Positions 1-42,785 of a stretch of DNA of 64,000 bases are shown here, piece by piece. Source of the DNA: Macrostomum lignano (lineage: Eukaryota); NCBI GenBank assembly GCA_002269645.1, contig NIVC01000231.1:1-64000 (forward strand). Reading direction: 5' to 3'. The notes beneath the pieces are model-generated. The model was not told the origin of the DNA, ran no database searches, and saw only the letters and a program-made list of their open reading frames with translations. Within the stretch, counting starts at the first letter, position 1; every line of letters starts with the position of its first letter. The position numbers and the translations under genes were made by a program.

Positions 1-1071
1 CGTCTTGATGCTGAATTACTTTTTTTCCGTCGGCCTCTCTTTGGGTTTTTAGATTATGACTGCTCCTATAGTATTTGGCGAAAACGCAAATGGCCTAATT
101 AAGTACGTCTCTCACTGTCACTCTCCGACTATGAGAATAATTCTCGTCGTCACGTTGTGCACCCTGCGCGAGATCTTCGATGCTTTTTAGCGTTAGTTTT
201 AGCTTATTAGAGCTAGAATTAAGGGCGCTCTTAACGAGCCGTGTAGCCTAGAAAGTTGTTCGATTCGATAGAAGGCCAGAGTACAAGGACCGGCAGACGA
301 GTTGCCCTTCTACGGTTTTGTCTATGGGCTGAGATGTGAAGCAGCTGCTGCGCATTCTGAGGGGAGCGAGAAGTTACTATGCTTTACAGTAGGTATGGAG
401 AAACAAGTATAATAGTTATATAGACTACCAAGTGGTATGCATCTGTTCAGTCGGACAAGTATTTCAAGGTGATGCAAGTTAATTAGAATTGGCCACGGTT
501 AGCGCGCAGCTAAATAGGCTGCTTGCGTCGATTCCCAAGGCAGCCACGGTAAATGAGTGATGCAGGGGTCATGCCTCGCCGAGCCGAGTGCTGCGGCTGT
601 ACCATTGGCTGTCTTCCAGAATCGTTTTGTATTAGGTGATTTATATTATACCGGTAGAGCAAAGCTAGGAGCAGACTCATTTCGACAAAATTTCTAGCGA
701 TAGCAATTTGTTACAGTAACTTGCATCCAAAAGTTTACATAAGTAATTTTTGTCTGGCAGGGGTCTCATGTTAAAGACATTGCACCACCGATGCATTACA
801 GGACACAAAAATGACAAGACCAAATATTTAAAAACTGAAATATAACATCAGATGCATCCCTAGATCGAACTATAATCAGAATGAAGTCTAGAACTTATGA
901 AAGACACTGCGTTTTAAATTTATGACGCCACGATACTTCTGGGGTTTCGGTTTGCGACCGAATGAATAAAGCCAACCCACAGTAAGCTTTCTAGATAACA
1001 TTCACTACAAGTAAGGACTACAAAAAGTCAATTTAAACTGTATAGTTCAATTAAATTATAACTTTTTCAAG

Positions 1072-4000
1072 GTCGCAAGTTTGTTGACCAATCATCGACG
1101 CCGTGCACAGCCAGAGTGACTCGAATAACCTACGCAGACCGAGTGACAGTTCGCCTCCTAGACAAGCATGGCAAGCAGTTGGGCCAGACAGTCCAACCGG
1201 AGGACGGCAAAATTGACGAAAATTTAATCTGGCTAAAAGACGACAGTCGTGAAGATGCAAATTTATTGAGCGCATCAGTTGAGCTCGGTGTGCCTAGCGA
1301 GTTTCTGCGCAAGTGCGGACTGGACATTGTGGATTCGCCCGGACTAAACGAAAACGACGCTCTTGACACCCTGACCATGCGGGCGATTGACTCGTTTCTG
1401 CCAATCATTTTGTACGTTATCGACGGTCGATACGGAATCACTTTGGCGGTAATTTTCTTCGAGCTACTGTTTTACATACAATAACTGAATCATTTACTTT
1501 GAGCATCAAAATAACCATTGTTTGTATTTTACCATATGGACCATAGGAAAATATATGAACAAAAACCAGTAGCTCTAAAACCATCCAACCCCGCGACCAT
1601 CCAACCCAAGACCATCCAACACCAAGACCATCCAACTCCAAGACCATCCAACACCAAGACGATCCAACCCCAAGACCATCCAACACCAAGACGATCCAAC
1701 CCCAAGACCATCCAACCCCAAGACCATCCAACCCCAAGACCATCCAACCCCAAGACCATCCAACCCCAAGACCATCCAACCCCAAGACCATCCAACCCCA
1801 AGACCATCCAACCTCAAGACCATCCAATCCCCAGAACCATCCAACTCCAAGACCATCCAACCTCAAGACCATCCAACCCCAAGACCATCCAACCCCAAGA
1901 CCATCCAACCCCAAGACCATCCAACCCCAAGACCATCCAACCCCAAGACCATCCAACCTCAAGACCATCCAATCCCCAGAACCATCCAACTCCAAGACCA
2001 TCCAACCTCAAGACCATCCAACCCAAGACCATCCAACCCCAAGACCATCCAACCCCAAGACCATCCAACCCCAAGACCATCCAACCCCAAGACCATCCAA
2101 CCCCAAGACCATCCAACCCCAAGACCATCCAACCCCAAGACCATCCAACCCCAAGACCATCCAACCCCAAGACCATCCAACCCCAAGACCATCCAACCCC
2201 AAGACCATCCAACCCCAAGACCATCCAACCCCAAGACCATCCAACCCAAGACCATCCAACCCAAGACCATCCAACCCCAAGACCATCCAACCCCAAGACC
2301 ATCCAACCCCAGGACCATCCAACCCTCAGCGGGGGGACAAGGACAAAGCACCCCAAACGCAACAACCACCTCAGCACGCACCGCCACCCCCACTAAACGC
2401 GATAGGCCCTCGCAAACCAGTGCCTAAGAAATTAGTCAGAATTAGTCACAATCCAACGCATCACTAAATGAAAACAAGTAAGCTCTCTATAATACCATCA
2501 AAACTCTACCACAGTTTCATTCCTTCCCTAGGCCGAGAAAGACATTGAAAACATTCGAGCCACAGCTCCGGAACTTGAACTATTCTATCTAGTAACAAAA
2601 ATGGACGTTTCCAAAGAGGATATTCCAACGCCAGAAAGTGGTCGTACAATCGAAGACATCGAGCAGGATCGTGCTCGACGTGTTTTCAGTCGACTCAAAA
2701 AGCTTCAATGCTTCGGCGCGGAAGAAACGCCCGAAAGTTGTTCGAGATTCTTCTGCATCTCGAGCTGGGAGATGAAGAACTACAGGAGGCGCGTGGCGAT
2801 AGCAATCAAAAGATCCGGCGGAGATCAAGCGGCCGGAGCCGCCGTGAAACGCAGCAAGTGGGTGCTTCGCTTCAACGAGATGCAACAAAAACTGGCCGAC
2901 TTCGCTGCCGAACAGTTTCGCAGCCTAATCCTTGGCGCTTGCTCAGGCTTGCGAGTTTTGCACTGCCAAACTATGGACTTGGTGATGAACAAGGCCAACG
3001 ATATTCGAGCTTGCACGCAGATGCGGCGCAAAAATCTCGAAATGATCCGAGCTATGGAGTGTCGGAACCACGAGCAGTCCAAGAAAATTGTTGAAAAACA
3101 TCGCGAAGGCTTTGAACGTGAGGCGGAAAGTTTAATTAAGAGTCAGGTAAGGAGGGCATTGATTTATTGGTGATACTTGTGATTACTATACGTGATACTT
3201 AGTTTTCGATTTTTGACGAAATTATAGTTGGCAATTGAATTCATTGCTGTGTATTAAAAGCCAAAAATGCTAAACTTACGATGTTCTCTAACAGCTTCCT
3301 GATCTCTCATCCGTTTTCAAATTCTGTTTCAAACGTTCTCTCCGTGCTAACGAAGTGCTAGACGAAAAAAATTTGTGCCATAGATATTAGATAAGTCAAG
3401 CACGAACTATTGCATGAAAGAATTGAAAACGCCTACCCGGTGTAATAACTAATAGATATTATAACTGATAATTTTAGTAACAAGTCGTAAGAGTTCATTT
3501 CTATTCTTGTAGAATGCGAGTTGACTTTGGTCTATGTCGGTGCACAAAATTGGGACAGAGCGGCTCAGGTAAACGCGACGGACTCTCGCGCTGGAATACC
3601 CAAAATCAGTGTTTGCTGTCTTACAGATGAAAACATCATGTCAACTGTGTAGTGCGAATGTGTGCCTGTGTACCCTGAATGACTAAGTGTTAGTAAGTTG
3701 GGAGATAGTCATTTTAGGCGTATTTGGATTTTTAAATAAATAAATAAATAAATAAACTATAGAAGCTACCCGTTTTACTCGCATGTTGTCACTGAAATTT
3801 TGGGATTGCACGTGACTGCCTTAAATGTACTTAAATTGCAACTTATATTCGTATTAACGATGATTTCTTGATTGTAAAAACCCATCGACGTGAGGTTTTT
3901 ACAAGATTTAAAAGTACAGTTTTGTCGAAGAAGACCCTGTTCATGTGTATCCCACTTGATGTCAAGTCGCAAATAATATTAATAATTGATTACACCTGTC

Positions 4001-7000
4001 ATAATGGCAGATGTACAACCGACAGCTCAGCTGCAGATATTGCGCGGCGCATCTGAAGGCTGCGTACGGCTGTTCAGTCCAAGGACTGGGGGGGGGGGGG
4101 GGGTTGCCACACACCCTCAATTATCCCAGCTAATGCTGGCACCCATTTTACAGCTGAGTGAACTGAAGCAATGAAGAGTTAAGTACCTTGCTCAAAAACA
4201 CAAATTGTTCAGTCGTTAGTCCGACGCGCTCTAACCACTAGGCTACAATATTTTAGACCTACGATTCCTAAAAAATCAGAAAACGAAACAACACATGCGT
4301 TTTTCTGTATATCCATGCAAAAAAACATTGAAGGGACCAATTCTGCTCGAGGAAGTGAAGTCGATGGAGTACTCAGAGAACGTCATCGACGCAAACCTCT
4401 CCTCCAATCAAATCGAAGAGCGCTGCGTCACCGAAATCCACCGATTCATCAACAACAGGGTTATCGTGGCCTATCAAGAGTTCCTGCAAAAGGGCGCAAT
4501 GCAGGACTGCTTCGCCGAATTAGAAGATTTAAAAGCTCGAGTGTTCGAATACGAGAGAGACATCGAGCAGACGCCAAGTTTGGCCGTGCTCAAAGCTACT
4601 CTAGCCGACGAGTGCGACCTGCAGGCTAGCGATATTTACAGCCTCGGCTTCAGGACGGTGATGCGTCAGATGTCGCTCAATATTCGAACGATTCTCCGTC
4701 ATCCCGGAGTGATTTTCAGTCGGCCAGTGCAGGATCCTGAGTGGAAGCGGTTTCAGGCCAAGTGTCATATCAGTGAGTCCTTGTGCACTAACTATCGTGG
4801 GACTAACTGATTGCGTATAACTCAGAACCTACCGATTTTAAGGGTTTCATATGTTCCAGGGTTCATGTGTTCCAGGGTTCATGTGTTCCAGCTAGGGTTC
4901 ATGTGTTCCAGCTAGGGTTCATGTGTTCCAGGGTTCATGTGTTCCAGGGTTCATGTGTTCCAGGGTTCATGTGTTCCAGGGTTCATGTGTTTCAGGGTTT
5001 CATATGTTCCAGGGTTCATGTGTTTCAGGGTTCATGTGTTCCAGGGTTCATGTGTTCCAGGGTTCATGTGTACCAGGGTTCATGTGTTCCAGGGTTCATG
5101 TGTTCCAGCTAGGGTTCATGTGTTCCAGGGTTCATGTGTACCAGGGTTCATGTGTTCCAGGGTTCATGTGTACCAGGGTTCATGTGTTCCAGGGTTCATG
5201 TGTACCAGGGTTCATGTGTTCCAGGGTTCATGTGTTTCAGGGTTCATGTGTTCCAGGGTTCATGTGTACCAGGGTTCATGTGTTCCAGGGTTCATGTGTA
5301 CCAGGGTTCATGTGTACCAGGGTTCATGTGTTCCAGGGTTCATGTGTTCCAGGGTTCATGTGTTCCAGCTAGGGTTCATGTGTTCCAGGGTTCATGTGTT
5401 CCAGGGTTCATGTGTTCCAGGGTTCATGTGTTCCAGGGTTCATGTGTTTCAGGGTTTCATATGTTCCAGGGTTCATGTGTTTCAGGGTTCATGTGTTCCA
5501 GGGTTCATGTGTTCCAGGGTTCATGTGTTCCAGGGTTCATGTGTACCAGGGTTCATGTGTTCCAGGGTTCATGTGTTCCAGGGTTCATGTGTTCCAGCTA
5601 GGCTTCATGTGTTCCAGGCTTCATGTGTTCTAGGGTTCATGTGTACCAGGGTTCATGTGTTCTAGGGTTTATGTGTTCCAGGGTTCATATGTTCCAGGGT
5701 TCCATGCGCTCCACTGTTTCATGTGTTCCAGGGTTCCATGCGCTCCAGGGTTCAAGTGTTCCAGGGTTTATGTGTTCCAAGGTTCAAGTGTTCCAGGGTT
5801 TATGTGTTCCAAGGTTCAAGTGTTCCAGGGTTCATGTGTTCCAGGGTTCATGTGTTCCAGGGTTCATGTGTTCTAGGGTTCATGTGTTCCAGGGTTCATG
5901 TGTTCCAGTGGTTTATGTGTTCCATATGAGTACCATGAGTTCTGTGAGTTCCATGAGTTCTGTGAGTTCCATGAGTTCTGTGAATTCCATGAGTTCTGTG
6001 AGTTCCATGAGTTCTGTGAATTCCATGAGTTCTGTGAGTTCCATGAGTTCTGTGAATTCCATGAGTTCTGTGAATTCCATGAGTTCTGTGAATTCCATGA
6101 GTTCTGTGAGTTCCATGAGTTCTGTGAATTCCATGAGTTCTGTGAGTTCCATGAGTTCTGTGAATTCCATGAGTTCTGTGAATTCCATGAGTTCTGTGAA
6201 TTCCATGAGTTCTGTGAATTCCATGAGTTCTGTGAATTCCATGAGTTCTGTGAGTTCCATGAGTTCTGTGAATTCCATGAGTTCTGTGAATTCCATGAGT
6301 TCTGTGAATTCCATGAGTTCTGTGAATTCCATGAGTTCTGTGAATTCCATGAGTTCTGTGAGTTCCATGAGTTCTGTGAATTCCATGAGTTCTGTGAATT
6401 CCATGAGTTCTGTGAGTTCCATGAGTTCTGTGAGTTCCTTGAGCTCCGTGAGTTCTGTGAGTTCCATGAGCGCCGTGATTTCGCTGAGTAAACTCATATC
6501 TACATAAATTACGGATCTAACTAAACTCATTGTAGAAAAGATCAACACAGGCCGACTGGTCGAATGCCTGGTAGACTCCATGAACAAATGGTTGGACAAG
6601 CGCCATTTCAGATTCTTGCAGAAGATCCGCTGTTCAGAACAGCTGGTAGAAAACTCGGCCAGCTTAAGCGAGTTGGAACGGCAGAGAATTGTCCAGCTGG
6701 CGCCTCGGCTCGCTTTCATGTACACCCGCTGTCTGGATGTCGCCACGGGCTACCAGTTCCGGGGATATACCATCGATAAGCGAGCTCAGCTTGGCTCTGG
6801 TGCTCAAGGCACCGTCTATGCGGTACGCGACACCCAGGGCGAGGTTGCTATGGCCGCTAAGGTGGTCAATGTGGAGTCGCAAAGTTTGGGCAACATTTCG
6901 TCGGAAGTTTTCTATAGCAGGTAAATTGCTTTGTGTGTAGTAAGGTTTGTCTGGATCTGCCTGTTTGATTGATACGAATGTCTGTCTTAGTGTCTGTCTC

Positions 7001-9626
7001 AGTGTCTCTCTCAGTGTCTGTCTCAGTGTCTGTCTCAGTGTCCGTCTCAGTGTCCGTCTCAGTGTCTGTCTCAGTGTCCGTCTGAGTGTCTGTCTGAGTG
7101 TCTGTCTCAGTGTCTGTCTGAGAGTCTGTCTGAGTGTCTGTCTGAGTGTCTGTCTCATTGTCTGTCTGAGTGTCCGTCTGAGTGTCCGTCTTAGTGTCTG
7201 TCTCAGTGTCTGTCTGAGTGTCTGTCTCAGTGTCTGTCTCAGTGTCTCTCTCAGTGTCCGTCTCAGTGTCTGTCTGAGTGTCTGTCTCAGTGTCTGTCTG
7301 AGAGTCTGTCTGAGTGTCTGTCTCAGTGTCTGTCTCAGTGTCTGTCTGAGTGTCTGTCTGAGTGTCTGTCTGAGTGTCTGTCTGAGTGTCTGTCTGAGTG
7401 TCCGTCTGAGTGTCCGTCTTAGTGTCTGTCTCAGTGTCTGTCTGAGTGTCTGTCTCAGTGTCCGTCTGAGTGTCTGTCTCAGCGTCTGTCTCTGTGTCCG
7501 TCTCAGTGTCTGTCTCAGCGTCTGTCTCAGTGCCTGTCTGAGTGTCTGTCTGAGTGTCTGTCTGAGTGTCAGTCTGAGTGTCCGTCTAAGTGTCTGTCTG
7601 AGTGTCTGTCTCAGTGTCTGTCTCAGTGTCTGTCTCAGTGTCTCTCTCAGTGTCTGTCTCAGTGTCTGTCTCAGTGTCTGTCTCAGTGTCTGTCTCAGTG
7701 TCTGTCTCAGTGTCTGTCTCAGTGTCTGTCTGAGTGTCTGTCTGAGTGTCTGTCTGAGTGTCTGTCTCAGTGTCTGTCTGAGAGTCTGTCTGAGTGTCTG
7801 TCTGAGTGTCTGTCTCAGTGTCCGTCTTAGTGTCTGTCTCAGTGTCTGTCTCAGTGTCTGTCTCAGTGTCTGTCTGAGTGTCTGTCTGAGTGTCTGTCTC
7901 AGTGTCTGTCTGAGTGTCTGTCTGAGTGTCTGTCTCAGTGTCCGTCTGAGTGTCTGTCTCAGTGTCTGTCTGAGTGTCTGTCTGAGTGTCTGTCTGAGTG
8001 TCTGTCTGAGTGTCTGTCTCAGTGTCTGTCTGAGTGTCCGTCTCAGTGTCTGTCTCATTGTCTGTCTCAGTGTCTGTCTCAGTGTCTGTCTCATTGTCTG
8101 TCTCACGCGTTCCCTAGCTGAGCCCTATGCAACTCATATCCCAACAGCGTATTGCGCCATTGCAACCTGCTGTCTATCGAAGGCGTTCGCCTGTTGGAAA
8201 CGCGCGAGCCCGACGATCCCGAAGAAGATGCCATCTGGACATTCGAGCTGTACATGGACCTCATGCACAGCGACGTTTGGCAACTGATGCAGAACCGGCA
8301 GCTGACCCTGCGCAAGCGGATCTGGTTTGGCCTGCAGCTGGCCAGAGCGCTTGAATTCCTGCACTCCAGCAGCCTCATCCATCGAGATGTGAAGCTGCAA
8401 AATTTGCTGGTCAGTAATTTTTAACTCATTAAGCTATGATAACCACATTTCTTTCCAAACAATCAGACACTGACACCCACCACCCCTATAAATTCTTGCC
8501 AACCAATCAGACACTGACACCCACCACCCCTATAAATCCTGCCAACCAATCAGATACTGACATCCACCACCCCTATAAATTCTTGCCAACCAATCAGACA
8601 CTGACACCCACCACCCCTATAAATCCTGCCAACCAATCAGATACTGACACCCACCATGTCTCAGAAAAGAAAAGACCAATCAGAAAGGAAGCCGAAGTGT
8701 TTTATTCCAACTTTTACCCAGCGCAGGTTGACGCCGAGCTCAATACGGTAAGGCTAACAGATTTCGGACTGCTCAAGAGCACGGGACTCACTGGTCAGTC
8801 GCTGGTTGGCACGCCGATCTATTTGGCACCGGAGATGGTCACCAACAGCAGCTATGATATCAGTGCCGATGTCTACAGCCTTGGCATTGCTCTGTGGTAT
8901 CTCTGGTAAAGTAATCAAGTGAAACATGCAAATCTATAGGAGTTAAAAAGGTTCTAGCTTTACATATATGTATACATCGTTCAAATATAGTTTTATCCTT
9001 GCAATTTATTTATTATTGCATTCATATTCTAAATACGAGTATCAGATCTTTTATTACTGATAAAATAAAGTCGCTTTCACGAGCTACGAATTTCAAAACA
9101 TCAGAATCGCTTCGCAGAAGTGACTATAACAAAAAGTTGAAAATGACTTTTTGTCAATGATTTTATGTTTCGAATTAGTTTAAATTATACTTCTATTTAT
9201 CTACTAAATAATTCAAATTTATGTTGACGCTTTAACTACGTGGATACACCACTTTTAACTTACGTATTTTTAACATATGTAAAATTTAGTAAATAACTTA
9301 ATGATGCACGATGCATGCTACCCTAAAATTTATTAACTATTTTGGGTTTAGAGTAAATAATTATTTATTTCTGTTAACTAAAAATTTATCAATTATTTAA
9401 CTCCAGTGAGGGCAGCGGCAGTAAGCATCCGAAATACGTGGAAGTGATGCCGTCGGTCGGAGCAATACTACTCGCAGGTAGCATGAATAGCAGACCGGAC
9501 CGACTGCCCTGCATACCCGCCGATCTTTGGGATCTGATGGAGCGCTGTTGGGACGCCCAGCCGCGGAACAGGCCGCCAGCGAAAGAGGTGGCCGACGCGC
9601 TGGATTATATTGAGAAAAACCTGTGA
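1072..9626 (+). CDS. DSTYK: DSTYK-like dual Ser/Thr/Tyr kinase with N-terminal dynamin-like GTPase domain; 5'-incomplete, 7 visible exons, ~824 aa
   Basis: Phase-consistent GT-AG exons: 1072-1448, 2532-3146, 4334-4772, 6536-6920, 8148-8409, 8727-8905, 9407-9626(TGA). N-terminus has STPCTARVT, IVDSPGLNEN and LVTKMD. Kinase motifs are LGSGAQGTVY, AAKVV, HRDVKLQNLL, TDFG, GTPIYLAPE and DVYSLG. LAPRLA and the tail RPDRLP..WDLMERCWD match DSTYK. Start exon and P-loop were not found in 1-1071. Confidence 0.85.
1580..2325. repeat. 16-bp minisatellite (CCCCAAGACCATCCAA), DSTYK intron
   Basis: Tandem units; source of the spurious TIQPQDHP ORFs. Confidence 0.95.
4040..4250 (-). mobile_element. tRNA-derived SINE remnant in DSTYK intron
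   Basis: A-box GTAGCCTAGTGGTTAGAGCG, followed by a conserved-core-like segment GCAAGGTACTTAACTC..CATTGCTTCAGTTCACTCAGCTGTAAAATGGGT; B-box apparently deleted. Confidence 0.55.
4845..6465. repeat. 16-bp (GTTCCAGGGTTCATGT) array grading into an 18-bp (CCATGAGTTCTGTGAATT) array, DSTYK intron
   Basis: 16-mer ~4845-5920; 18-mer ~5930-6465. Confidence 0.95.
6975..8105. repeat. 12-bp minisatellite (CTCAGTGTCTGT), DSTYK intron
   Basis: Tandem units fill most of the intron. Confidence 0.95.
8455..8660. repeat. ~44-bp tandem repeat containing CCAATCAG and TATAAAT, DSTYK intron
   Basis: ccaaccaatcagacactgacacccaccacccctataaat, ~4.5 copies. Confidence 0.9.
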
Positions 9627-9686: not shown

Positions 9687-10405
9687 TGTTCCTTATTACC
9701 AGTCCTCAACCGTAATCAAGGAACAATCACTTCTAGCTACTTTGCTAGGCAACCCACTAATTAACTGAAGGTATTCAATTACCTTTAATCCGGATGTGTA
9801 GATCTCTTCCTTGAGTTGATCTCGAACGTAGATCTCGCTGACTGTTATTCACAGTTGATCTGTCGATCAGGCGCCTTGTCTCTCCTGTTGCTCTGGTCCT
9901 GATTCTTCTTTGTCTCTAGCCGACCGGTATCTGCAGTCAGGACCAATCAGAGGCCTCGTATCAACAATGGGATCCCTGCGCCGAACTGCGGTTTGAATTA
10001 AGCCTCCTTCTTCTAGCAGTGCCTCTATGCACTCTAGGTATGGCTCCGGTAACCACTGATAGTCTTCTAACTGGCAACCAGTAGAGTCTAAACAGACTCA
10101 AGAGTCTCAACAGACTCAACTAAACTCAAGTAACACTATAGACTTGAGCGAGACGTCTCTAACACAACGGGCGCAAATAAGGAAGGCTTACCGCAACAAC
10201 TCGACCGAGTCTCGATTGACTTGGTTGTTCAGGAAGTCCTCCTAAGGCTTCCTCTTCGGAGCTTCTCCTCTCGTCGGGAGTTGGCTCCTGGTCCGCTTCG
10301 GACCGCTTGTATTTATAGGCGAATTTGCAGTCCAAAATAGCAGCATTACAACTCATGTGTTGCGCTAAAAGGGGAACATAGCTCATCGCGTATTTTCTGG
10401 TAACA
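9687..10405 (-). mobile_element. Putative solo LTR (719 bp)
   Basis: TGTT...AACA termini; 5-bp flanks TGATG/TGATT (one mismatch). Minus-strand TATAAATA near 10310-10317 and ATTAAA near 9785-9790. Confidence 0.5.
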
Positions 10406-10854
10406 TGATTCATTTAAGATTTTAGGTGCGCATGCGTGTACTTGCTTACTTACTTACAGTAGCATCCTACGATTAACTTCTTTTTCCTTTTTTACGGGAG
10501 GTAGAACACTCTACAATAAGCGATAAATTCAATTATAAAACATGAACAAATAAGCAAACTCTTTTCAATTCCACTTTTCAGCAATTTGACTCCGATTAAA
10601 ATAATTTAATTACAATAATGATTCATATTTTCAAACTTTACGGTGTTTTAATACTTCAGTATTTAAAATATTTAAAGTTTCATATCGTTTCAACTTTTGT
10701 CTGTGCTAATAAAATTAAATTGCTTTAAATAATTAATAGCGCGTTTTGATTTATTTTTTTTCAATTTGTACGATTTAAGTTTTAAATAAACAGTTTCTTT
10801 GAACAAATTAACAAAAAATGAATAAGATAATCGTTTAAAGACTATAAGGCTAAC

Positions 10855-11100
10855 TGGGGGAATTGCTGAGATGCCAAATGTTCAAAGGGGGGATTGCTAA
10901 GATGCCAAATGTTCAAAGGGGGAATCGCTGAGATTCCAAATTCTCAAAGGGGGCATTGCTGAGATGCCAATGCTCAAATGGGGTCATTGCTGAGATGTCA
11001 AGGCCCACGGTAGGGGAATTGCTAAGATGCCAAATGCTCAAAGGGGGAATTGCTGAGATAAGCCAAATGCTCAAAGGGGGAATTGCTGATATGCAAAGGG
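10855..11100. repeat. ~33-bp degenerate tandem repeat (GGGGAATTGCTGAGATGCCAAATGCTCAAAG)
   Basis: About 7 copies between the two putative LTRs. Confidence 0.85.
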
Positions 11101-11208
11101 TCAAGTTGCAGATATAAATTAATAAATGGCATAGACACATTGAAATTATGCCGACTAGCAAGACGAAAGATTGGCGGATCATCACTGCAATTTGCACATT
11201 TAGGCAGG

Positions 11209-11605
11209 TGTGTACTCTCTTCAGAGTAGATCTTGGGCAGGCGCACAGACCGTCAACAGGACTGTACATGCTTCTCGGTTGAGAGAAAAAGAGGGGAGAT
11301 CGGGGGGGGGGGGGCAGAGATGAAGCAGCTCTTAGGGATTAGCGGATGCTGGCTTGAGCTCCGCAGAGAGCGCGTGCGGGCGGGAGAGAAGGAGAGCAGA
11401 GAGGGGAAGAGATCCGCGATAAAGGAAAGCAGAACCCTAAAGGCTCAGGAGGTGTACTCAGACCCTCACTATACTGCTCAAGTCAGTCGGGCCAACCTCT
11501 CTCTATTTCTCTGCGTGTTCAGGGCTTGGCCATGAGATATATAGGAAGCTCTGGGGGGGGTGTCTGTGGGGTAGAGAGCTAGGCTTTGCTCAATGCAAGT
11601 ACACA
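11209..11605. mobile_element. Putative solo LTR (397 bp)
   Basis: TGTGTAC...GTACACA inverted termini; 5-bp flanks GCAGG/GAAGG (one mismatch); TATATA box near 11538. Confidence 0.4.
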
Positions 11606-11872
11606 GAAGGATTTACCGCGCTCACTTAATACATACATAAGTTCTCCTCCCAGTCAGTTCACTTGTGTTAGCTGAGTTCTCCCTCCCTCACTCTCTCACT
11701 CACTTAAGCGCAAAAATCACACTAATTTATTGTGCGATAGATAGATAGAACACCCCCTTTTGGCCTAAATTAGCTCAGCCATTATCATCATGCGATTGTT
11801 CATTCTATACTTGGAAATATGATATAAGATTTCAACATTAATCAATAGGTTTATCGTGTAGAAAAAACTGCT

Positions 11873-14800
11873 ATGAATTCTTTGCGAAATTGCTATCTGA
11901 TGGCCATCGTGAGCCTGCTGGCACCTCTGCTGCTTCTTTCGTGGCTGGACATCGGCAGTGCTACCGCGACCAAACCTCAGCTAGATGCTAAGGAGTGAGT
12001 TTACCGGCAATGGCCTAATTTACTGTCAGTTTGGCTCACAGTCTGTCACTCTCATGCTGTCACTCCCATCACGTCACTCATTTCCTCACTCGGTATGTCA
12101 CTCTCATTCACTCTCATTCCGTCACTCTCATTCCGTCACTCTCATTGCGTCACTCTCATTCACTCTCATTCCGTCACTCTCATTGCGTCACTCTCATTGC
12201 GTCACTCTCATTCACTCTCATTCCGTCACTTTCATTCCGTCACTCTCATTCAATCTCATTCCGGCACTCTCATTCCGTCACTCTCATTCCGTCACTCTCA
12301 TTCCGTCACTCTCATTCCGTCACTCTCATTCCGTCACTCTCATTCCGTCACTCTCATTCCGTCACTCTCATTCCGTCACTCTCATTCCGTCACTCTCATT
12401 CCGTCACTCTCATTCCGTCACTCTCATTCCGTCACTCTCATTCCGTCACTCTCATTCCGTCACTCTCATTCCGTCACTCTCATTCCGTCACTCTCATTCC
12501 GTCACTCTCATTCCGTCACTCTCATTCCGTCACTCTCATTCCGTCACTCTCATTCCGTCACTCTCATTCCGTCACTCTCATTCCGTCACTCTCATTCCGT
12601 CACTCTCATTCCGTCACTCTCATTCCGTCACTCTCATTCCGTCACTCTCATTCCGTCACTCTCATTCCGTCACTCTCATTCCGTCACTCTCATTCCATCA
12701 CTCTCATTCACTCTCATTCCGTCACTCTCATTGCGTCACTCTCATTCCGTCACCTTTATTCCGTCACTTTCATTCACTCTCATTCCGTCACTCTCATTCC
12801 GTCACTCTCATTCACTCTCATTCCATCACTCTCATTGCGTCACTCTCATTCCGTCACTCTCATTCCGTCACTCTCATTCCGTCACTCTCATTCCGTCACT
12901 CTCATTCCGTCACTCTCATTCCGTCACTCTCATTCCGTCACTCTCATTCCGTCACTCTCGTTCTGCGTCACTCTTATTCCGTCACTCTCGTTCTGCGTCA
13001 CTCTCATTCTGCGCCACTCTCATACCGTCATTCTCAGCATGTCACTCGTATTCCGTCACTCTCAGCATGCCACTCGTATTCCGTCACTCTCAGCATGCCA
13101 CTCGTATTCCGTCACTCTCAGCATGTCACTCGTATTCCGTCACTCTCAGCATGGCACTCGTATTCCGTCACTCTAAGCATGGCACTCGTATTCCGTCACT
13201 CTCAGCATGCCACTCTCCTGCACTCATGGGATGAATCTGATACTAGCATAAACAAACTCCCAATTAACGTAGACGAACACCGATTAAATTCCAGAATCAA
13301 CGCTTGGGTTCAAACTATCGCTAACAATTTCGAAAAAGTTCGTCGACAGCTTGGCATTGAAAAGTTCGAGCGGGTGAGAACACTGCGTGGTCGCTCAATT
13401 TCTTCAAGAAATGTATCGCTTTTATAACTAATAGAAACAACATTGCTTTTGTTGCTGCAGAAATTCGAAGAAAATCGAGTTGTCTCCGACAATCGCAACG
13501 AGGCCCAAGGCCAACAATTGATGAATGATATCAAGGCTAGGATAGGAAAATTCACCTATAAATATGAGGAGCACGTGAAGGTAAGCGTGAAATTATTTGA
13601 TTTAACCAGTTAAAAATAAGTACCAACAATGTTCCCAATCTTTTCTTAATCATCAAGAGAATTCGTGTTGAAGCCGAATATGCCTTTGCCGGTCATACGC
13701 ATCGGAACTACTCGTTGAATGTAAGTCTGTTTAAGTAGTAATAATTAAAGCGTATAATTATTATACTTTAGTGTCTCTAATAAAAGTGGATGGTAACAAA
13801 GATAGGGTAGATTAGGAAACGCATAGTAAGCTTGAGACGGGAGATGGGTAAGAGGAGAGTAGTGAGGGTAGAGTAGTGAGGGTAGAGTAGTGAGGGGAGA
13901 GTAGTGAGGGGAGAGAAGTGTGGGTAGAGTAGTGAGGGTAGAGTAGTGAGGGGAGAGTAGTGAGGGTTGAGTAGTGAGGGCAGAGTAGTAAGGGGAGAGT
14001 AGTGAGGGTTGAGTAGTGAGGGGAGAGTAGTGAGGGTTGAGTAGTGAGGGCAGAGTAGTAAGGGGAGAGTAGTGAGGGTTGAGTAGTGAGGGGAGAGTAG
14101 TGAGGGTTGAGTAGTGAGGGCAGAGTAGTAAGGGGAGAGTAGTGAGGGTTGAGTAGTGAGGGCAGAGTAGTAAGGGGAGAGTAGTGAGGGTTGAGTAGTG
14201 AGGGCAGAGTAGTAAGGGGAGAGTAGTGAGGGTTGAGTAGTGAGGGCAGAGTAGTGAGGGGAGAGTAGTGAGGGTTAAGTAGTGAGGGCAGAGTAGTAAG
14301 GGGAGAGTAGTGAGGGTAGAGTAGTGAGGGGAGAGTAGTGAGGGCAGAGTAGTGAGGGAGAGTAGTGAGGGAGAGTAGTGAGGGCAGAGTAGTGAGGGTA
14401 GAGTAGTGAGGGGAGAGTAGTGAGGGAGAGTAGTGAGGGAGAGTAGTGAGGGAGAGTAGTGAGGGCAGAGTAGTGAGGGTTGAGTAGTGAGGGGAGAGTA
14501 GTGAGGGTAGAGTAGTGAGGGGAGAGTAGTGAGGGGAGAGAAGTGTGGGTAGAGAAGTGAGGGGAGAGTAGTGAGGGAGAGTAGTGAGGGAGAGTAGTGA
14601 GGGCAGAGTAGTGAGGGTTGAGTAGTGAGGGCAGAGTAGTAAGGCTTGAGTAGTGAGGGGAGAGTAGTGAGGGGAGAGTAGTGAGGGTAGAGTAGTGAGG
14701 GGAGAGTAGTGAGGGGAGAGAAGTGTGGGTAGAGAAGTGAGGGGAGAGTAGTGAGGGGAGAGTAGTGAGGAGAGAGTAGTAAGGGGAGAGTAGTGAGGGG

Positions 14801-17800
14801 AGAGTAGTAAGGGGAGAGTAGTGAGGGGAGAGTAGTAAGGGGAGAGTAGTGAGGGAAGAGAAGTGAGGGTAGAGTAGTGAGGGGGGATGTGAGGGTAGTG
14901 TAGTGAGGGTTGAGTAGTGAGGGGAGAGTAGTGAGCGGAGAGAAGTGAGGGTAGAGTAGTGAGGGGAGAGTAGTGAGGGGAGAGTAGTGAGGGGAGAGTT
15001 GTGAAGGGAGAGAAGTGTGGGTAGAGTAGTGAGGGTAGAGTAGTGAGGGGAGAGTAGTGAGGGGAGAGTAGTGAGGAGAGAGTAGTGAGGGTAGAGTAGT
15101 GAGGGGAGAGTAGTGAGGGTTGAGTAGTGAGGGGAGAGTAGTGAGCGGAGAGAAGTGAGGGTAGAGTAGTGAGGGTAGAGTAGTGAGGGGAGAGTAGTGA
15201 GGGGAGAGTAGTGAGGAGAGAGTAGTGAGGGTAGAGTAGTGAGGGGAGAGTAGTAAGGGGAGAGTAGTGAGGGGAGAGAAGTGAGGGAAGAGAAGTGAGG
15301 GGAGAGTAGTGAGGGGAGAGAAGTGAGGGGAGAGTAGTGAAGGGAGAGTAGTGAGGGGAAAGAAGTGAGGGTAGAGTAGTGAGGGTAGAGTAGTGAGGGT
15401 AGAGTAGTGAGGGTTGAGTATGAGGGGAGAGTAGTGAGGGGGGATGTGAGGGTAGTGTAGTGAGGGTAGAGTAGTGAGGGTAGAGTAGTGAGGGGAGAGT
15501 AGTGAGGGGAGAGAAGTGAGGGTAGAGTAGTGAGGGTAGAGTAGTGAGGGTAGTGTAGTGAGGGTAGAGTAGTGAGGGTAGAGTAGTGAGGGGAGAGTAG
15601 TGAGGGGAGAGAAGTGAGGGTAGAGTAGTGAGGGTAGAGTAGTGAGGGTAGTGTAGTGAGGGTAGAGTAAGGACTGCGGAGAATGAAGGGTGCAGATGAA
15701 GCTAGCAAACAATCTCTTCATCGCAAAAACCGCAGTGCTTGGAGCTCAAGGACCAGCCCTTCCTCCGAGCGACAGCGATCGAAGACAAACCCCACGAATC
15801 GTCCAACAACACGCATCAAAACTTGGACCCAGAGTCGCGCAACACAGTCTACGTGATGCAGAAAACTGAGGACGTTGAGAACTTTTGTTCAGCGCCTACT
15901 CTGGTTGAGTTGAATCCTGACCCCAGGCTCTATGGCGTTGAGACCAATCGCAAGGTGTCCACTGCGCACGTGCCGTCCAATATCTACGATGCCTGTGAGA
16001 GCCTCTGTGATTTGCTGGACTCACAAAATGGGAGGGGATTCGACCAGTGCCTGTCATATTGTCCCCACTGTTCATGTCTCTCTGTCCCTGTCTCTGTCCC
16101 GGTCTCTCTGTCCCTGTCTCTCTGTCCCTGTCTCTCTGTCCCTGTCTCTGTCCCGGTCTCTCTGTCCCTGTCTCTCTGTCCGTCTCTCTGTCTCTGTCTC
16201 TCTGTCCCTGTCTCTCTGTCCCTGTCTCTCTGTCCTTGTCTCTCTGTCCCTGTCTCTCTGTCCCTGTCTCTCTGTCCGGCCTGTCTCTCTGTCCCTGTCT
16301 CTCTGTCCGTGTCTCTCTGTCTCTGTCTCTCTGTCTCTGTCTCTCTGTCCCTGTCTCTCTGTCTCTGTCTCTCTGTCCGGCCTGTCTCTCTGTCCTTGTC
16401 TCTCTGTCCTTGTCTCTCTGTCCTTGTCTCTCTGTCCTTGTCGACTCTCTGTCCCTGTCTCTCTCCCTGCATCTCTCTGTAAGTGTCAGGGTAGAAAATT
16501 TCTCATATTTTAAACTCTCTCATCCGAGTGCCACCCAATCCGTTAACATATTGTAGCCACGAGCATGCTTAACGCAGCAAACTGGTCGCAGGGCCTTGAC
16601 AAAGTGTTCGAATCTAATGCAGCATTGGACCCGATGCTGAAATGGCAGTACTTTGGCAATACGGAGGGATTGTTCAAAATCTATCCCGGTATTCGTTGGT
16701 ATATTCAGACTAAGGACCTGGGCAGTAAGGATATTACTTTGGACTTTTTCGATTGTCGAACTCAGTACTGGTAAGACTGAAAATACAAACGTTTGACAAT
16801 CGTATATTGACGCTCACCAATTTAGCAAATCCTTGCTTTCATTTTTAATCAACAATCAGGTACTTATTGGCTGCCTCCTATCCAAAAGACATGGTCATCT
16901 TACTGGACAATAGCGGCTCTATGAAAGGTCGTCGATCAATCATTGCCAACATGACCCTAACTGAACTGCTGTACACGTTGAATGTTAACGATTTCTTCAA
17001 CGTGATTATGGTGAGTTTGAACCAATTTCACTTTTGAATGTATATAACTTCTAACATGTATTTTATTTTCTTTGGATAGCTATTTAAAACCTCCGGAGAG
17101 GTTTTTCTTAAATTTGAATTTGTTTTACTCTGAATTTTCAAACGTTGTCCGTTTCAACTGCATGCGCAATTTCCCTCCAGTGCATGCTGTGCGATCCTTC
17201 GGTGTTGTTTTCAAATTCTGTTGAGGTTACATTTTTAACGTGTGCAGCTATTTGTTTGGTAACTTGCTGTGAAATTGAATTACATGTAATTGTGTGCCTT
17301 TTAAACTTCTTAATATCCGTTTTTGTGTTTAGATTCTCTATACATTTGTTCTGTCCTTGGATTAGTATCGTTATAAATGTACATGTATATAGTTCTGTAT
17401 CTGTCCTGTCATATTGGTTCGCAGCATGATTTCTACCTATTTTTAACATCTTAACCGTTTATTAGAACAACTTATAATTTAAATATCATTTCGCGGAATT
17501 GTTCGTTAAGATTACAAAATCGCCACACGAGGAAGTAAGTATAAAATTAATGAGTTTGTGTGTATATGCATTAAAATGCACGGAGTATTAAATAAAACGC
17601 GTAAAATTTGCACGATTTCCTGGATAACATAAGCTTGAAAATATCTCACTATGACAAACATATCGCTATTCATCATCAATAATAGAAACCTGCAAATCCA
17701 ATTAATTTATTCATTTAAATTTCGCTCTTAAAAGTAATTCAAGATTATTAAAACGTTTGAATTTCGTTAAAATTAAAGTAATAGCTAAATTACATGTGTG

Positions 17801-37500: not shown

Positions 37501-40500
37501 GGGGACAAAAGAAAAGATAGACGAAAAGAGGAGAGACAAAGGGGTGAGGAAAGAGCAAAGAATATGGGAAGAAGAAGCAACATGAGGGGAGAAAGGATTG
37601 AGAGGAAAGATTAGAAAGGATAGAGGAGAAGAGATAAGAGAGGGAAAGAAGAATGAGAAGAGAGGAGAGTGGAGAGAGAAGAGAAGAGAGAATACAGAAA
37701 GAGAGCATAGAAGGAAGAGAAGAGAAGAGAAGAGAGGAAAAAGGAAAGAGAGGAGTCAAAGATCGGAAATAAAAGAGTACATAGGAAAGAGATAGGAGAA
37801 CATATAAGAAAGTAAAGTTGACAGAAGAGAGAGGGGAGATGAGAGAACAGAGATAAGAGAGTAGAGAGAACAGAGAAGAAGAGAAGAGATTATGGAAATG
37901 AGAGAAGAGGAAGAAGAGAAATGTGTGAGAGTAGAGAAGAGAGACAAAGAGAGAAAGAAATGGAGTGAGGATAGAAGAGGGCAGAGAATTAACAGAACAA
38001 GGGAGAGAGGGGAGAGGAAAGAGGGGAGAAAGTAGAGAAAAGAGAGATGGGAGAGTGGAGAGCAGAGAGATTAAAAGGAAAGAGAAGAGATGAGAGGGAA
38101 GAGGGGAGAGAAGAGGGGAGAGAGGAGGAGAGAAAAGAGTGAGGAAAGAGAAGAGAATAAAAGAGGGAAGAAATGAGATAAGAGAGATGAGAGATGCAAA
38201 AAGAGAGAAATGTTAAGAGATACAAGAGCACAGGATAAAAGAAGAGAAAGGAGAGATGAGAGATCAAAGGCAAGAGAAAAGACAAGAGAAGAGGGGAGAG
38301 AGGAGAAAGGAAACATAAGCAAAGATAGAAGTTTTGAAGGATTCCAAGGGACATAGAGAGAGGCAGAGGCAGAGGTCAGAGTTTTTCAATACATGTTTTA
38401 GACAGACATTGCCTGATATTCTATGCAGCACCCTAGCCAACGAGATCAATGCTTGCCTCAAATCTTAATTTTATACAAATTTATTCAATTTATATTTATC
38501 TCTATCTATTAACAAGTCTATTAACCTCCAACTATTAATAATTTTTTGTTTATGTATGACTTTAGACTTTAGAAAACAAGCAAAAATAGTTCCAAAGATT
38601 GAAATTCCCTGGGTTCAAAATCTGTAGGTTTCAACAGCTTGTGTCAAACATAAAAAACAAAAAAGGTCTGTTATTGTTGTAGCACAAGTTTTTTGGGTGC
38701 CCCATAAGTCTCCACTGCAAGTTTTAAAAAAAATCAGAAGTATTTTATCAACATAAACTTGAAGAAGCCCATTGCATTTTGTTCATTTCGGGGTTTAGCT
38801 TAAACTGACGGAAGCGTAATATAGTTAGAGTGTGGATGGAGAACCTATACATTTTTATATGTAAAAATGGGGTATGTGTGGAATATACTGATACTACTAA
38901 TTGCCATAAAATTTTACTATGCAATCTTATAAAGCCAAATGTACATGTATTATTAGTACACCAGTATATATATTTAGTCCATTTAACAATGAGTTTTTTG
39001 CGGGTATGAACAATGCAAGCCAGTATATGTAACTACTCATTTTACAGAGAAGTGAAATTTGTACATTTTAACAAATTCATTTCAACAACAAATGTATACT
39101 TTGGCCATTTAAATCTAATACCCCTGTACTTGTGAACTTGTAGTTGTTATTATGCTGTTGCCCTTTTGACTGTTGGCTGTCGCCTCTTTAACTGTTGCCC
39201 TTTTGAACAGTTCCCACAATATGTCTCATTTGCATGTATTGGACTCATCCAGAAATTAAAATAGATAGGTTAAAACACTTTTAAATAAGTTAAACAGATC
39301 TAAATACGCATGTGTTTTCACTGTTTTGTCATTCTTTCTTTAATGTTTGCTCACACATTTTGTCAGAGCATATCAATTAATATATATTATATATTATTCC
39401 CACTTGTTACTGAAATGGCTGTTACCAACATAGTCATTTTTTGTTACCGAAGTGGCTATAACCAAAATGGCTGTTAGGCCCATAGTCATGAAGGTGGCAC
39501 AGTGTGCATCGGAATAATTTTTTGGGACAATTTGTGCGCCATCTATGTGCTGTCTGTGCGCCACTCTTTACAAGTAGAGTTTTCTAAGAAAGGCCTTTGT
39601 ACAAAAAGCCTTTTTAAAATGTTACGCATATTTTCATTTTAAACAAACTTAAATTATACCTACAAATAGAATGATGCAAAATTGACATTTTTAGCCATTT
39701 ATTAGATTTATACTAATTTTATTTACTGTTAATTTTAAAGAAGCAAAAAGTTATCATTGACTTTTTAGACTACACAAATCTCCTTTATTTTATAAAAATT
39801 GTTAATTTGCATTACAATTTTCATGCATGTCAGGGACTTTATGCACCGCAATTATGCGCCGCATGTGTTAGGGACCTCAGTATGCGCCATGATTGTGTAC
39901 CAAGTGCGCCAAGGACCCATTATGTGCGCCGCACTTGTGCGCCAATGTGCCCCGAGACCCTTTGTGTGCATAGGAATTTTCCCCCTCAGAGGCTAGGATG
40001 GAATTCTTGTATTTCTTAAGTCAAACGGAATTATGCAATTTTTTTATGGCGCGCAAAATATTTTTTATTGGTCACATTTTTTATTTTGGTACTTAGCATG
40101 TCGCAAAATAACGAAATAACAAAAGACAACGAAAAATGCATTCTAGAAAATGTAGTGATTTGAATTTTTGTCCAAATACGTATGTTAGAGAATGTTACGA
40201 GCGCGATGCGCCGCTTTCGCCCCATTAGTGTTGATGACGGACCAGGCCACGTGCCCTCTGGCATCGGGCCCTGAAGCAGAGACGGCTTGGATGGTGTCAT
40301 CGACAGCAGACTGCTGCCTCTGCAGGTAGACAGCCGCCAGAGCCTCCTCCGCCTCACGAGTTTGCCGCCCACTCAGACGGAGCCTCTCTAGATCTTCCCT
40401 TGCTTTGTCGATCGCGGGGTCGTCCTGCCAGACCGGCTGCCTACGCTGGGCCAGTCGCATCAGTGGGACTGCTTGCTCCGCAGCGGCTCGAACTGCAGTG

Positions 40501-42785
40501 CTCACCTGGCAGGCGACACTCCGGATGAGCGCAGGAACGAGCTGCGCGAGTTCTTCGCCGCCATTGTCAATGCGCCACCCCCTCTGCTTCTAGAAAATCT
40601 GAGGCTGCCGCCAGAGATGCCATTGCTGGTAGAGGAGAGCTTCAACATTGCCCCAGTCAGCACAGCCGACGTTGTGAAGTTTGCTCGGCAGTCGCCAGGC
40701 GGCAAAGCGCTTGGTCCAGACGAGGTGCCCACCGAGGCGCTGCGGATCCACTGCGTGGCCACTGAGGTTGCCAGAGTGATGAACCGCGTGCTTTCCAGTG
40801 AGGTGGCGCCAAACGAATGGACCACGGCGCACATCGTTGCCATTCCAAAGAAGCCGGGCACCACCAAGCTGGAGGAGCATCGAGGCATCTGCCTACAGTC
40901 CTGCGCCGCGAAGCTGTTCAACCGCATGCTGCTATCGCGGTTACAGCCTGTGCTAGACTGGTACCTGCGACCTGAGCAAAACAGTTTCCGGCCCCATTGC
41001 GGCACAGTGACGCAGATCCTGGCTCTTCAGCGAGTCATCGAGGAGGCACACATCTACCAGTTGACCCTGATCCTAATCTTCGTCGATTTCAGGAAGGCCT
41101 TCGACTCGGTCGTGAGGGACGCGCTCCTAGAGGTGCTCCATGCGTACAACGTGCCAGAGCTACTGATTTCTGCTGTCATGGCGCTGTACCACGGCACAAT
41201 GGCTGCTGTCTCAACACCGGACGGCCTATAGGATTTCTTCGAGACATCCTCCGGGGTGCTCCAGGGAGATACGCTAGCGCCGTTCCTATTTATTCTGGTG
41301 CTTGACTGGGTGCTACGGACTGCTCTGCTTTCCAACGATGACGGCTTCCTGCTGCGGCGACGTGTTGGTCGACGCCAACCGGAGAGACGGCTCAGCATGC
41401 TTGGCTTCGCCGATGACCTCGCCCTGCTGTCCTCGACCGTTGAGGGCGCCCAATGACAGCTGGATAGGCTGGTTGGCGTTGCGGCGAGCGTTGGCCTGGT
41501 GGTCAACACGTAGAAGACCATTGTGCTATGCGTGCTGGACGACACCGAGGCTGCAATCTTCTGCCAAGGCGCTGACGGACAGGCGAGTGAGCTTCCAAGA
41601 TGTCAGCAGTTCATCTACCTCGGCGGTCTGGTTCCCGACGTCCGCAAGGATCTGCGGCGTCACCGAGGACTTGCCTGGGCTGCCTTTCGTTCTATAAGGT
41701 CAGTCCTGCAGTCCGAGGCCCTACCGGACTGCCAGAGGGCGGCGCTGTTCCAGGCGGTGATTGAGACCGTCCTGTTATACAACGCCGAGACCTGGACGCT
41801 GACAGACTCGCTCGAGGCTCAAGTTGACGCGCGCATGCTGGCCTGCTACGCACCGCCTTCAAGATCGACAACGAGCGAGTCACCAACACGGCACTTTATC
41901 ATCGCGCCGGCCTGGCCTGTCCTAGCAATCTGCTGCGCCGTCGGCGACTCCAGCTGGCAGGCCACGTCATCCGCGCCGAGGCCTACTGTCTGGAGCTGGT
42001 GCAGGAGGTGCTGCTACTTATGTTGCAGGCACCCTACCGGCGGGGACAGGCAAGGACTTGGCGCTACGTCGACTGTCTGCTAGCTGACGCCGGCGCCCCG
42101 GACTCTACCAGTGGTGCAGCCTTTGTTCGCGCCCAAGCTTCGAAGCGAGCCATCTAACTCTGCTTTTGCGAACTGACAGCGTACTCTATTGTTGTTGTTG
42201 TTGTTACAAGTTTCTACTTTTTAGAATTTTTCAAATTTTTACTTTTGTGCCTTATTTAGTTTTTACTTTTTATTCTTTTTACTTCGTGATCTTAGCTAGT
42301 AGGATTATCTTTTGCAAAATCCAATACTCAAGCACACTTTTACATATATAAAGAATTAGCAATTTTGCCTGAAATTCTGTGACACATTTTTTCTGGATTT
42401 TTTGACGCAAAATTGCATTTTTTTGCGCAATTGCATAATGCGTTGTGATTAATCTGCAAGAATTCCATCCAGGCTCGTCTCAGAGGCCACCTTCCTGACT
42501 ACGGGTTAGGCCTACTAAAGTGGACTGTTACCATAAAGTTTGCAATGGAAAAAAACATATATTTTACCATATTAACTAAAGACGTGGCTACTTAGATATG
42601 AGAAAGTGGCACTGGAATTTTTAAAAACCTATCTTGTCAATTCTTGGCCTAGCCTAGGCCTATTCTGAGTTAAAGACTCCTAAAGAGTAAATACAAGTTT
42701 GAGTTTATTCAAATTTAACATGTTGAGCAACTACCAATAAGAAGTTAGAAAACTTACCAGAAATAAGATCCTTAAAAATGAGCAT
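34576..42785 (-). CDS. TPT1: Translationally controlled tumor protein (TCTP), 170 aa, 3 coding exons
   Basis: Exon 1 42785-42758 (MLIFKDLIS-G, gtaagt donor). Exon 2 35821-35340 (GDELASDSYP...IGGNASAEE...WQFFTGEKMDPDAMVVLMDYREDGMTPYFVLFKDGLIEEKC). Exon 3 starts with TAA at 34578-34576 after taatttcag. AATAAA-type signals lie near 34120-34135 on the minus strand. Confidence 0.95.
34770..35322. repeat. ~21-bp degenerate minisatellite (TATTGGGGATCTGGGAGATTC), TCTP last intron
   Basis: Shares the core GGGGATCTGGGAGATTCT with 33190-33950. Confidence 0.9.
36273..37111 (+). mobile_element. Degenerate non-autonomous Helitron in TCTP intron 1
   Basis: A|TCTCATATATATAAAAATCTAAACTCTGTGTGTCTGTAT start. 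Decayed 3' end tctgcagcaatgcaaggtggtttgtaaaaATAG|T. Confidence 0.45.
37440..38340. repeat. GA-rich low-complexity tract in TCTP intron 1
   Basis: Almost purine-only composition on the + strand. Confidence 0.85.
39993..42478. mobile_element. Putative non-autonomous DNA transposon (8-bp TSD, hAT-like) that hosts the RTE insertion
   Basis: Imperfect inverted ends GGATGGAATTCTTG / CAAGAATTCCATCC flanked by direct repeats CTCAGAGG (39985-39992 and 42479-42486). Confidence 0.5.
40200..42208 (+). mobile_element. 5'-truncated, inactivated RTE-clade non-LTR retrotransposon (LINE)
   Basis: RT-domain residues KALGPDEVP, IVAIPKK, RGICLQS, RPEQNSFRP, FVDFRKAFDSV, GVLQGDTLAPFLF, LGFADDL, FIYLG and LLYNAETWTL. 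Interrupted by stops (41229, 41454, ~41511) and frameshifts; ends in a (TTG)n tail. Confidence 0.9.

Follow-up and report, generated by a model that had tools for sequence, protein, structure and literature searches.

A DSTYK-family gene of the flatworm Macrostomum lignano with a predicted BDLP/mitofusin-type G domain whose motifs are degenerate in vertebrate DSTYK

Human DSTYK is an understudied protein linked to urinary-tract malformations, the spastic paraplegia SPG23, lysosome and autophagy control and STING signalling, with scoliosis-like defects in fish. In the family reviews only the kinase domain is described, and the remainder of the protein is treated as undefined in the DSTYK literature found. 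A locus of the flatworm Macrostomum lignano raises the question of whether that remainder is a GTPase. The locus lies in a stretch of 64,000 nucleotides (contig NIVC01000231.1, positions 1 to 64,000; hereafter the window), where the initial annotation had proposed an ancestral-type fusion of a GTPase and a kinase, with a mitofusin/dynamin-like domain that might still bind GTP. The best explanation as a whole, to which we give a probability of about 0.8, is that the locus is a DSTYK-family gene with a motif-intact BDLP/mitofusin-type G domain, which would act by the mechanism proposed below and which represents the ancestral state, vertebrate DSTYK having become a pseudo-GTPase.

The window contains coding exons 2 to 8 (seven of eight) of a Macrostomum lignano DSTYK-family gene. 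The DNA is eukaryotic and minisatellite-rich with clear GT-AG introns, and seven GT-AG exons on the forward strand, joined from stop-free stretches with consistent phases and with a stop codon in the last, give an 824-residue product. The GenBank protein BOX15_Mlig016260g1 of the same species (P0001; 944 aa, "partial") matched the queried N-terminal 551 residues at 100% identity, and the per-exon tblastn matches were 99-100% across the exon cores. The kinase part differed from the annotated protein at two amino acids (CLDVATG/CLNVATG and AELNTV/AELTTV). The segment 1072-3146, which had been taken to hold the N-terminal exons, consists of exactly two GT-AG exons and a 1083-bp intron between them; these are coding exons 2 and 3, and not the first exons of the gene. 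Exon 2 matched residues 120-246 of P0001 at 99-100%, with agreement of the AG/GT boundaries and the phase. The G2, G3 and G4 motifs in these two exons (TPCTARVT, IVDSPG and VTKMD) read as the initial annotation had them, as do the helical stalk and the kinase that follow in the five downstream exons, where all catalytic motifs are present (LGSGAQGTVY, the lysine of VAMAAK, HRDVKLQN, DFG and APE). The kinase part matched Pfam Pkinase at 3.5e-37.

The full-length protein P0001 scored 62.9 bits against Pfam Dynamin_N (gathering threshold 27). The window-encoded part alone reached 25 bits (E 2e-5), just short of the threshold because the G1 motif is missing from it. The same N-terminal part matched BDLP of Nostoc (2j68) with an E-value of 8.6e-7, with PCTA (NPCTA in BDLP), DSPGLN and the G4 region in register. 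The Dynamin_N and BDLP matches together indicate that the motifs are real and more than chance. IVDSPG was aligned to the DSPG of BDLP and MFN1, and the Cys-Thr of G2 was nearly invariant across the DSTYK-family homologues. A family profile built from 22 members and run against all PDB sequences found BDLP first (1e-24, over the G domain and the first helical bundles) and MFN1 second (3.5e-17), followed by Campylobacter DLP, MFN2, Fzo1 and IniA. An AlphaFold model of residues 1-672 (mean predicted local distance difference test score, pLDDT, 77.8; predicted template modelling score, pTM, 0.64) showed a Ras-like core and, after it, very long helices. In a Foldseek search of the PDB with this model, the top 50 matches were all members of the dynamin superfamily, with BDLP 2j69 first (3e-16), then Campylobacter DLP, MFN2, IniA, SynDLP and MFN1. 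The N-terminal module is thus, by profile match and predicted fold, a mitofusin/BDLP-type dynamin-like G domain with a helical stalk, as had been suggested. The protein of about 944 residues is predicted to comprise a short N-terminal helix, this G domain, an extended neck and trunk built of helices and, at the C-terminus, a TKL-type kinase that looks active. Membership of the ROCO or Ras-like families was considered and rejected, as every such Pfam score was below threshold. An Rfam scan of the whole window gave no match.

The first two bases of the exon at 1072 complete a glycine codon, so that a preceding coding exon is required, and tblastn found no segment within the window for residues 1-119 of the annotated protein. 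The same locus is present at approximately 96% DNA identity in a second contig of the public assembly Mlig_3_7 (NIVC01000284.1, hereafter L001), whose positions 10374-16671 were compared with the window. Given an identity of only about 96% and the two amino-acid differences, the window and L001 probably represent different haplotype or subgenome copies; Macrostomum lignano is a partly polyploid species. Coding exon 1 is a single exon at L001 6034-6363, approximately 4 kb upstream of the window start, and encodes ...CIVVVGQSNSGKSTFINELLG, which contains a canonical P-loop, GQSNSGKS, with its lysine. P0001 reads the same. With this upstream exon, whose recovery the initial annotation had called for, none of the four nucleotide-binding motifs departs from the canonical form: G1 GQSNSGKS (exon 1), the G2 threonine in PCTA, G3 DSPG and G4 TKMD. 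A UniRef model of the same gene (P0002) joins ...GGGFNS straight to RKFVDQ, so that 31 residues, the entire P-loop among them, are skipped, and it ends inside the kinase domain. A G1 exon inside the window was also sought. The superficially P-loop-like open reading frame (ORF) near its start, reading IVFGENANGLIK, was rejected, since it is out of splice phase with the exon at 1072 and the window gave no tblastn match to the real N-terminus. Within that ORF is a short exon-like piece (AG ... GTACGT) encoding IMTAPIVFGENANGLIK, a degenerate P-loop mimic that matches nothing in the annotated protein and is probably due to chance.

To place the gene, vertebrate DSTYKs were retrieved with a human DSTYK sequence used as a probe only; the conclusions rest on the retrieved database sequences. 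Word-indexed searches with the flatworm N-terminus or with Lingula DSTYK returned nearly exclusively close relatives or unrelated kinases, and did not reach vertebrate DSTYK. By hhalign, the profile of the invertebrate homologues aligned to the vertebrate DSTYK profile with an E-value of 1.4e-98, collinearly over residues 19-943 (847 columns). The non-kinase part alone gave 4e-39 (residues 21-667 against 25-645), and the G domain alone aligned to vertebrate residues 111-317 with 98% probability and an E-value of 2e-13. The flatworm kinase domain scored 133 bits against vertebrate DSTYK, at 35% identity, compared with 96 bits for the best PDB kinase. The initial description of a DSTYK-like kinase therefore extends to the whole protein, and the gene is, on these alignments, a member of the DSTYK family.

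In the same profile alignment, GQSNSGKS of the flatworm G1 is opposite GQDCNVKC in vertebrates, TPCTA of G2 opposite EENCK, VDSPG of G3 opposite VVAPC, and VTKMD of G4 opposite FFKVP. The statement in the initial annotation that vertebrate DSTYK lacks intact G3 and G4 was accurate, and the loss extends to G1 and G2. Vertebrate DSTYK had no Pfam match to Dynamin_N even at E<=10, and Dynamin_N was absent from the precomputed Pfam annotation of all 120 tetrapod DSTYKs listed. As judged by alignment, vertebrate DSTYK has kept the fold and lost all four motifs, and would thus be a pseudo-GTPase.

To establish how widely the intact motifs are distributed, the N-terminal profile was searched against 1.84 billion representative proteins. 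It matched 2339 proteins at E<=1e-3, of which 30 reached E<=1e-30, with cyanobacterial dynamin family proteins among the nearest kinase-less relatives. All 20 of the long matches scanned (852-1187 aa) had Dynamin_N above threshold together with a kinase match, the latter sub-threshold (degenerate) in several. The homologues were mostly of about 850-960 residues, with one of about 1190, and the named taxa included Nemertea, Hemichordata, Brachiopoda, Cephalochordata, Cnidaria and a bivalve, some with several genes on one contig. Motifs were counted in 37 long aligned sequences, part of them named or domain-checked and one (P0076) a cyanobacterial dynamin. G1 was intact in 36, G2 in 33-34, G3 in 33 and G4 ([TNS]KxD) in 32, and all four were intact together in 27-28. 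Several invertebrate paralogues had lost G3, or both G2 and G3. Macrostomum has divergent paralogues, 44% identical and named DSTYK in UniRef, and both keep all four motifs. The simplest reading of a motif-intact state common to cnidarians, protostomes, hemichordates and amphioxus is that it is ancestral, in keeping with the ancestral-type state first proposed. The sequences thus suggest that it is probably the general, ancestral condition of animal DSTYKs, with motif loss most simply placed on or near the vertebrate stem. The flatworm locus is therefore typical of its family and not exceptional.

The alternative that survives best is that the dynamin-like module is a structural scaffold without GTP turnover even in Macrostomum, its motifs serving nucleotide binding only or folding, and that the protein functions through its kinase and protein contacts as vertebrate DSTYK does. 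Vertebrate DSTYK works with all four motifs destroyed, so the family can do without GTPase chemistry, and the invertebrate paralogues that have lost G3, or G2 and G3, point the same way. We nevertheless consider this unlikely, as the joint retention of the four motifs in most of the aligned homologues, from distant phyla, and in both of the divergent Macrostomum paralogues is the pattern expected from purifying selection on nucleotide chemistry.

It is also conceivable, with a somewhat smaller chance still, that the flatworm gene is a lineage-specific DSTYK-like paralogue and not an orthologue of vertebrate DSTYK, in which case it would have little bearing on the ancestral protein. There are many paralogue groups, with apparent same-contig clusters in hemichordates, Lingula and amphioxus, and at least two divergent copies in Macrostomum itself. 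In a neighbour-joining tree (no support values, no outgroup), however, both Macrostomum genes fell in one group with the active-kinase genes of Tubulanus, Saccoglossus, Ptychodera, Lingula and Branchiostoma and with vertebrate DSTYK, while other "DSTYK-like" groups with weak kinase domains fell elsewhere. Moreover, the score of the flatworm kinase against vertebrate DSTYK exceeds its score against most invertebrate "DSTYK-like" proteins, and the inference of ancestral motifs does not depend on the flatworm gene alone. A third alternative, that gene prediction merged an adjacent dynamin-like gene and kinase gene into an artefactual fusion, could draw on the long, repeat-filled introns and on the conflicting gene models (P0001 "partial", P0002 truncated and without the P-loop segment), but has a negligible chance of being correct and was rejected, as the splice phases are consistent over all seven exons, the same architecture recurs in 20 of 20 tested homologues from several phyla, and the protein is collinear with vertebrate DSTYK, including the stalk that bridges the two domains.

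Several points weigh against our preferred reading of a motif-intact, GTP-hydrolysing DSTYK. GTP binding and hydrolysis by the flatworm G domain are what we infer from the motifs and the predicted fold only. G1 was read in L001 and not in the window, and its state in this exact copy is presumed to be the same. The skipping of the P-loop in P0002 may be a prediction artefact or may reflect a real P-loop-less isoform. The AlphaFold model is of moderate confidence, and its putative paddle region (residues 544-581) has a pLDDT below 50; this loop, at the position of the BDLP paddle, carries a semi-conserved W...HP...WK pattern. There was no transmembrane-like segment in the protein, where the highest Kyte-Doolittle 19-residue mean was 1.38, in a strand of the G domain. 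Membrane binding, if any, must therefore differ from the mitofusin mode. Finally, the tree that groups the gene with vertebrate DSTYK is a neighbour-joining tree lacking support values.

In BDLP and the mitofusins, the G domain binds GTP, dimerises across the nucleotide-binding face and drives a hinge movement of the helical bundles on the membrane. By analogy, the flatworm G domain would bind and hydrolyse GTP and would dimerise through its G interface as in these proteins. On an endolysosomal or vacuolar membrane, dimerisation may then move the helical bundles from a closed to an open state and back, and the kinase, which is attached where the trunk ends, could be positioned or gated according to the nucleotide state. 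Both the membrane action and the coupling of GTPase and kinase are suggested by likeness to these relatives. Zebrafish dstyk mutants show membrane-fusion defects of the notochord vacuole (PMC7012607), late endosomes are a site of DSTYK action (PMC11933320), and DSTYK has effects on the biology of lysosomes and autophagosomes and on mitochondrial fitness (PMC9524203). The vacuole-fusion, late-endosome and lysosome phenotypes of vertebrates fit a membrane role of DSTYK.

A broader proposal, which we advance tentatively and would not yet favour over its negation, is that DSTYK was at its root a BDLP/mitofusin-type membrane-remodelling dynamin with a kinase on the end of its trunk. In most animals, the place and time of kinase action on endolysosomal or vacuolar membranes might be set by a live GTPase cycle, and in vertebrates the module would have become a pseudo-GTPase scaffold. 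If this were true, it would explain in structural terms why the phenotypes of vertebrate DSTYK involve vacuole fusion, lysosomes and late endosomes, and the N-terminal 650 residues, where the non-kinase disease variants fall, would become interpretable. If the vertebrate region is a decayed dynamin module, membrane action would be a concrete mechanism that fits the membrane-fusion phenotype. The Macrostomum, Nematostella and amphioxus proteins would then be tractable systems for studying GTPase-kinase coupling.

The locus itself is of little import, as the gene is already in GenBank and the pair of Dynamin_N and kinase is auto-tagged in many invertebrate DSTYKs. PF00350 is auto-tagged on several of the homologues found here, and one Nematostella UniProt entry is named "Dynamin N-terminal domain-containing protein". 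The initial annotation had asked whether intact motifs are common in invertebrate DSTYKs and already described. They are common and carry automatic database tags, but no paper describing them was found; full-text literature searches, with the original 2006 Dusty paper outside their reach, found none that links DSTYK with a dynamin-like or GTPase domain. The point at family level, that the dynamin-like GTPase is motif-intact in invertebrate DSTYK and would be a pseudo-GTPase in that of vertebrates, is thus probably under-described.

Table 1. Positions of the DSTYK-family gene, repeat arrays and other features in the window
Feature	Position	Strand	Description
P-loop-like ORF (rejected as G1 exon)	53-187		Contains the exon-like piece at 53-103 (+), probably chance
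Coding exon 2	1072..1448	+	Opens with last 2 bases of a Gly codon; G2 TPCTARVT 1098-1121; G3 IVDSPG 1326-1343
Intron 2	1449..2531	+	Mainly a 16-bp minisatellite at 1580-2325, ~47 copies of ACCATCCAACCCCAAG
Coding exon 3	2532..3146	+	G4 VTKMD 2592-2606; G5-like FFCISS 2748-2765; first long stalk (neck) helix (predicted secondary structure)
Coding exon 4	4334..4772	+	Predicted trunk helices; low-confidence loop GVIFSRPVQDPEWK 4706-4747 at the BDLP paddle position (model)
Coding exon 5	6536..6920	+	Last stalk helix (predicted); kinase N-lobe with LGSGAQGTVY glycine loop 6790-6819 and beta-3 lysine in VAMAAKV 6844-6864
Coding exon 6	8148..8409	+	Kinase alpha-C region through catalytic loop HRDVKLQN 8380-8403
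Coding exon 7	8727..8905	+	DFG 8760-8768; activation segment; APE 8826-8834 (counted from exon start)
Coding exon 8	9407..9626	+	End of kinase C-lobe and TGA stop codon
Intron minisatellites	1580-2325, 4841-5924, 5933-6464, 6979-8105, 8449-8656		Periods 16, 16, 18, 12 and 44/87 bp, respectively; <=94 copies, 89-96% match
Tandem arrays downstream of gene	10856-11094, 12108-13204, 13854-15669, 16075-16480
VWA_N-like segment	16547-16771	+	Apparent alpha2/delta subunit gene
Segment with VWA motif	16849-17034	+	DNSGSMKG
GC-rich island	40473-42083		Probably a degraded non-LTR retrotransposon

The in-window introns of the DSTYK gene, with the exception of the last (8906-9406), are each largely taken up by a different minisatellite (Table 1). 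These minisatellites account for the long spurious ORFs seen in several frames. Further tandem arrays lie downstream of the gene. One of them is 1.8 kb long, with approximately 131 copies of the 14-bp unit GGAGAGTAGTGAGG, and causes a GC-skew spike of +0.8 at 14-16 kb. From about 16500 onward, the forward strand encodes a VWA_N-like segment and a VWA motif, and the gene called after DSTYK in L001 has VWA_N, VWA and VGCC_alpha2. Judged by these domains, the next downstream gene appears to be a voltage-gated calcium-channel alpha2/delta subunit. The GC-rich island, at 58% GC in surroundings of about 36%, contains overlapping, frame-broken ORFs with reverse-transcriptase-like motifs (IPKKPG..., FVDFRKAFDSV), and is probably a degraded non-long-terminal-repeat (non-LTR) retrotransposon.

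DSTYK-like genes appear to be clustered in hemichordates. In Saccoglossus, four such genes (P0012, P0013, P0034 and P0160) are present on one contig of 296,890 bp, and in Ptychodera three (P0015, P0031 and P0037), with close or consecutive accessions, are on one 50.6-Mb contig. Several of the clustered copies have an intact GTPase and a weak or degenerate kinase, the reverse of the vertebrate pattern.

Among known systems, vertebrate DSTYK (Dusty, RIPK5, SgK496) resembles the flatworm protein in its similar length (920-945 residues) and in its whole-length collinear homology. Their C-terminal kinases, about 35% identical, both have HRDxKxxN, D[FL]G and APE. Conservation extends to the helical stalk, and the fold of the G domain is recognisably homologous. 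The two differ in that the four GTPase motifs of the vertebrate protein are degenerate, with no Dynamin_N match, whereas those of the flatworm are canonical and the protein scores 62.9 bits. The top sequence and structure matches of the flatworm protein are BDLP of Nostoc punctiforme (2j68/2j69) together with Campylobacter DLP1/2, SynDLP and IniA. In common with this group it has the PCTA and DSPGLN signatures in the G domain, followed by neck and trunk helical bundles. BDLP, however, lacks a kinase and has a hydrophobic paddle to which nothing in the flatworm protein clearly corresponds. The identity is only about 15%, and the G4 of BDLP is NAWD, compared with [TNS]KxD in the DSTYK family.

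The mitofusins (MFN1, MFN2 and yeast Fzo1) share a branch of the dynamin superfamily with the flatworm protein and likewise use DSPG as G3. The G domain and the first helical bundle align (profile E-value 3.5e-17), and Foldseek gave 4e-12 with a TM-score of 0.57 relative to the target. Unlike the mitofusins, the flatworm protein has no transmembrane anchor and lacks the mitofusin context of the switch-I histidine, and it carries a C-terminal kinase. The ROCO proteins (LRRK1 and LRRK2, with Roc-COR and a kinase) also join a GTPase to a TKL-type kinase within a single polypeptide, and in both cases control of the kinase, or of its localisation, may lie with the nucleotide state. The GTPase class is, however, unrelated (the flatworm Pfam Roc match has an E-value of 0.028 and 15 bits, against a threshold of 27), the architecture differs, and the flatworm protein had no Pfam match to a COR domain. 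The likeness to the ROCO proteins is one of logic, drawn by analogy, and not of family membership.

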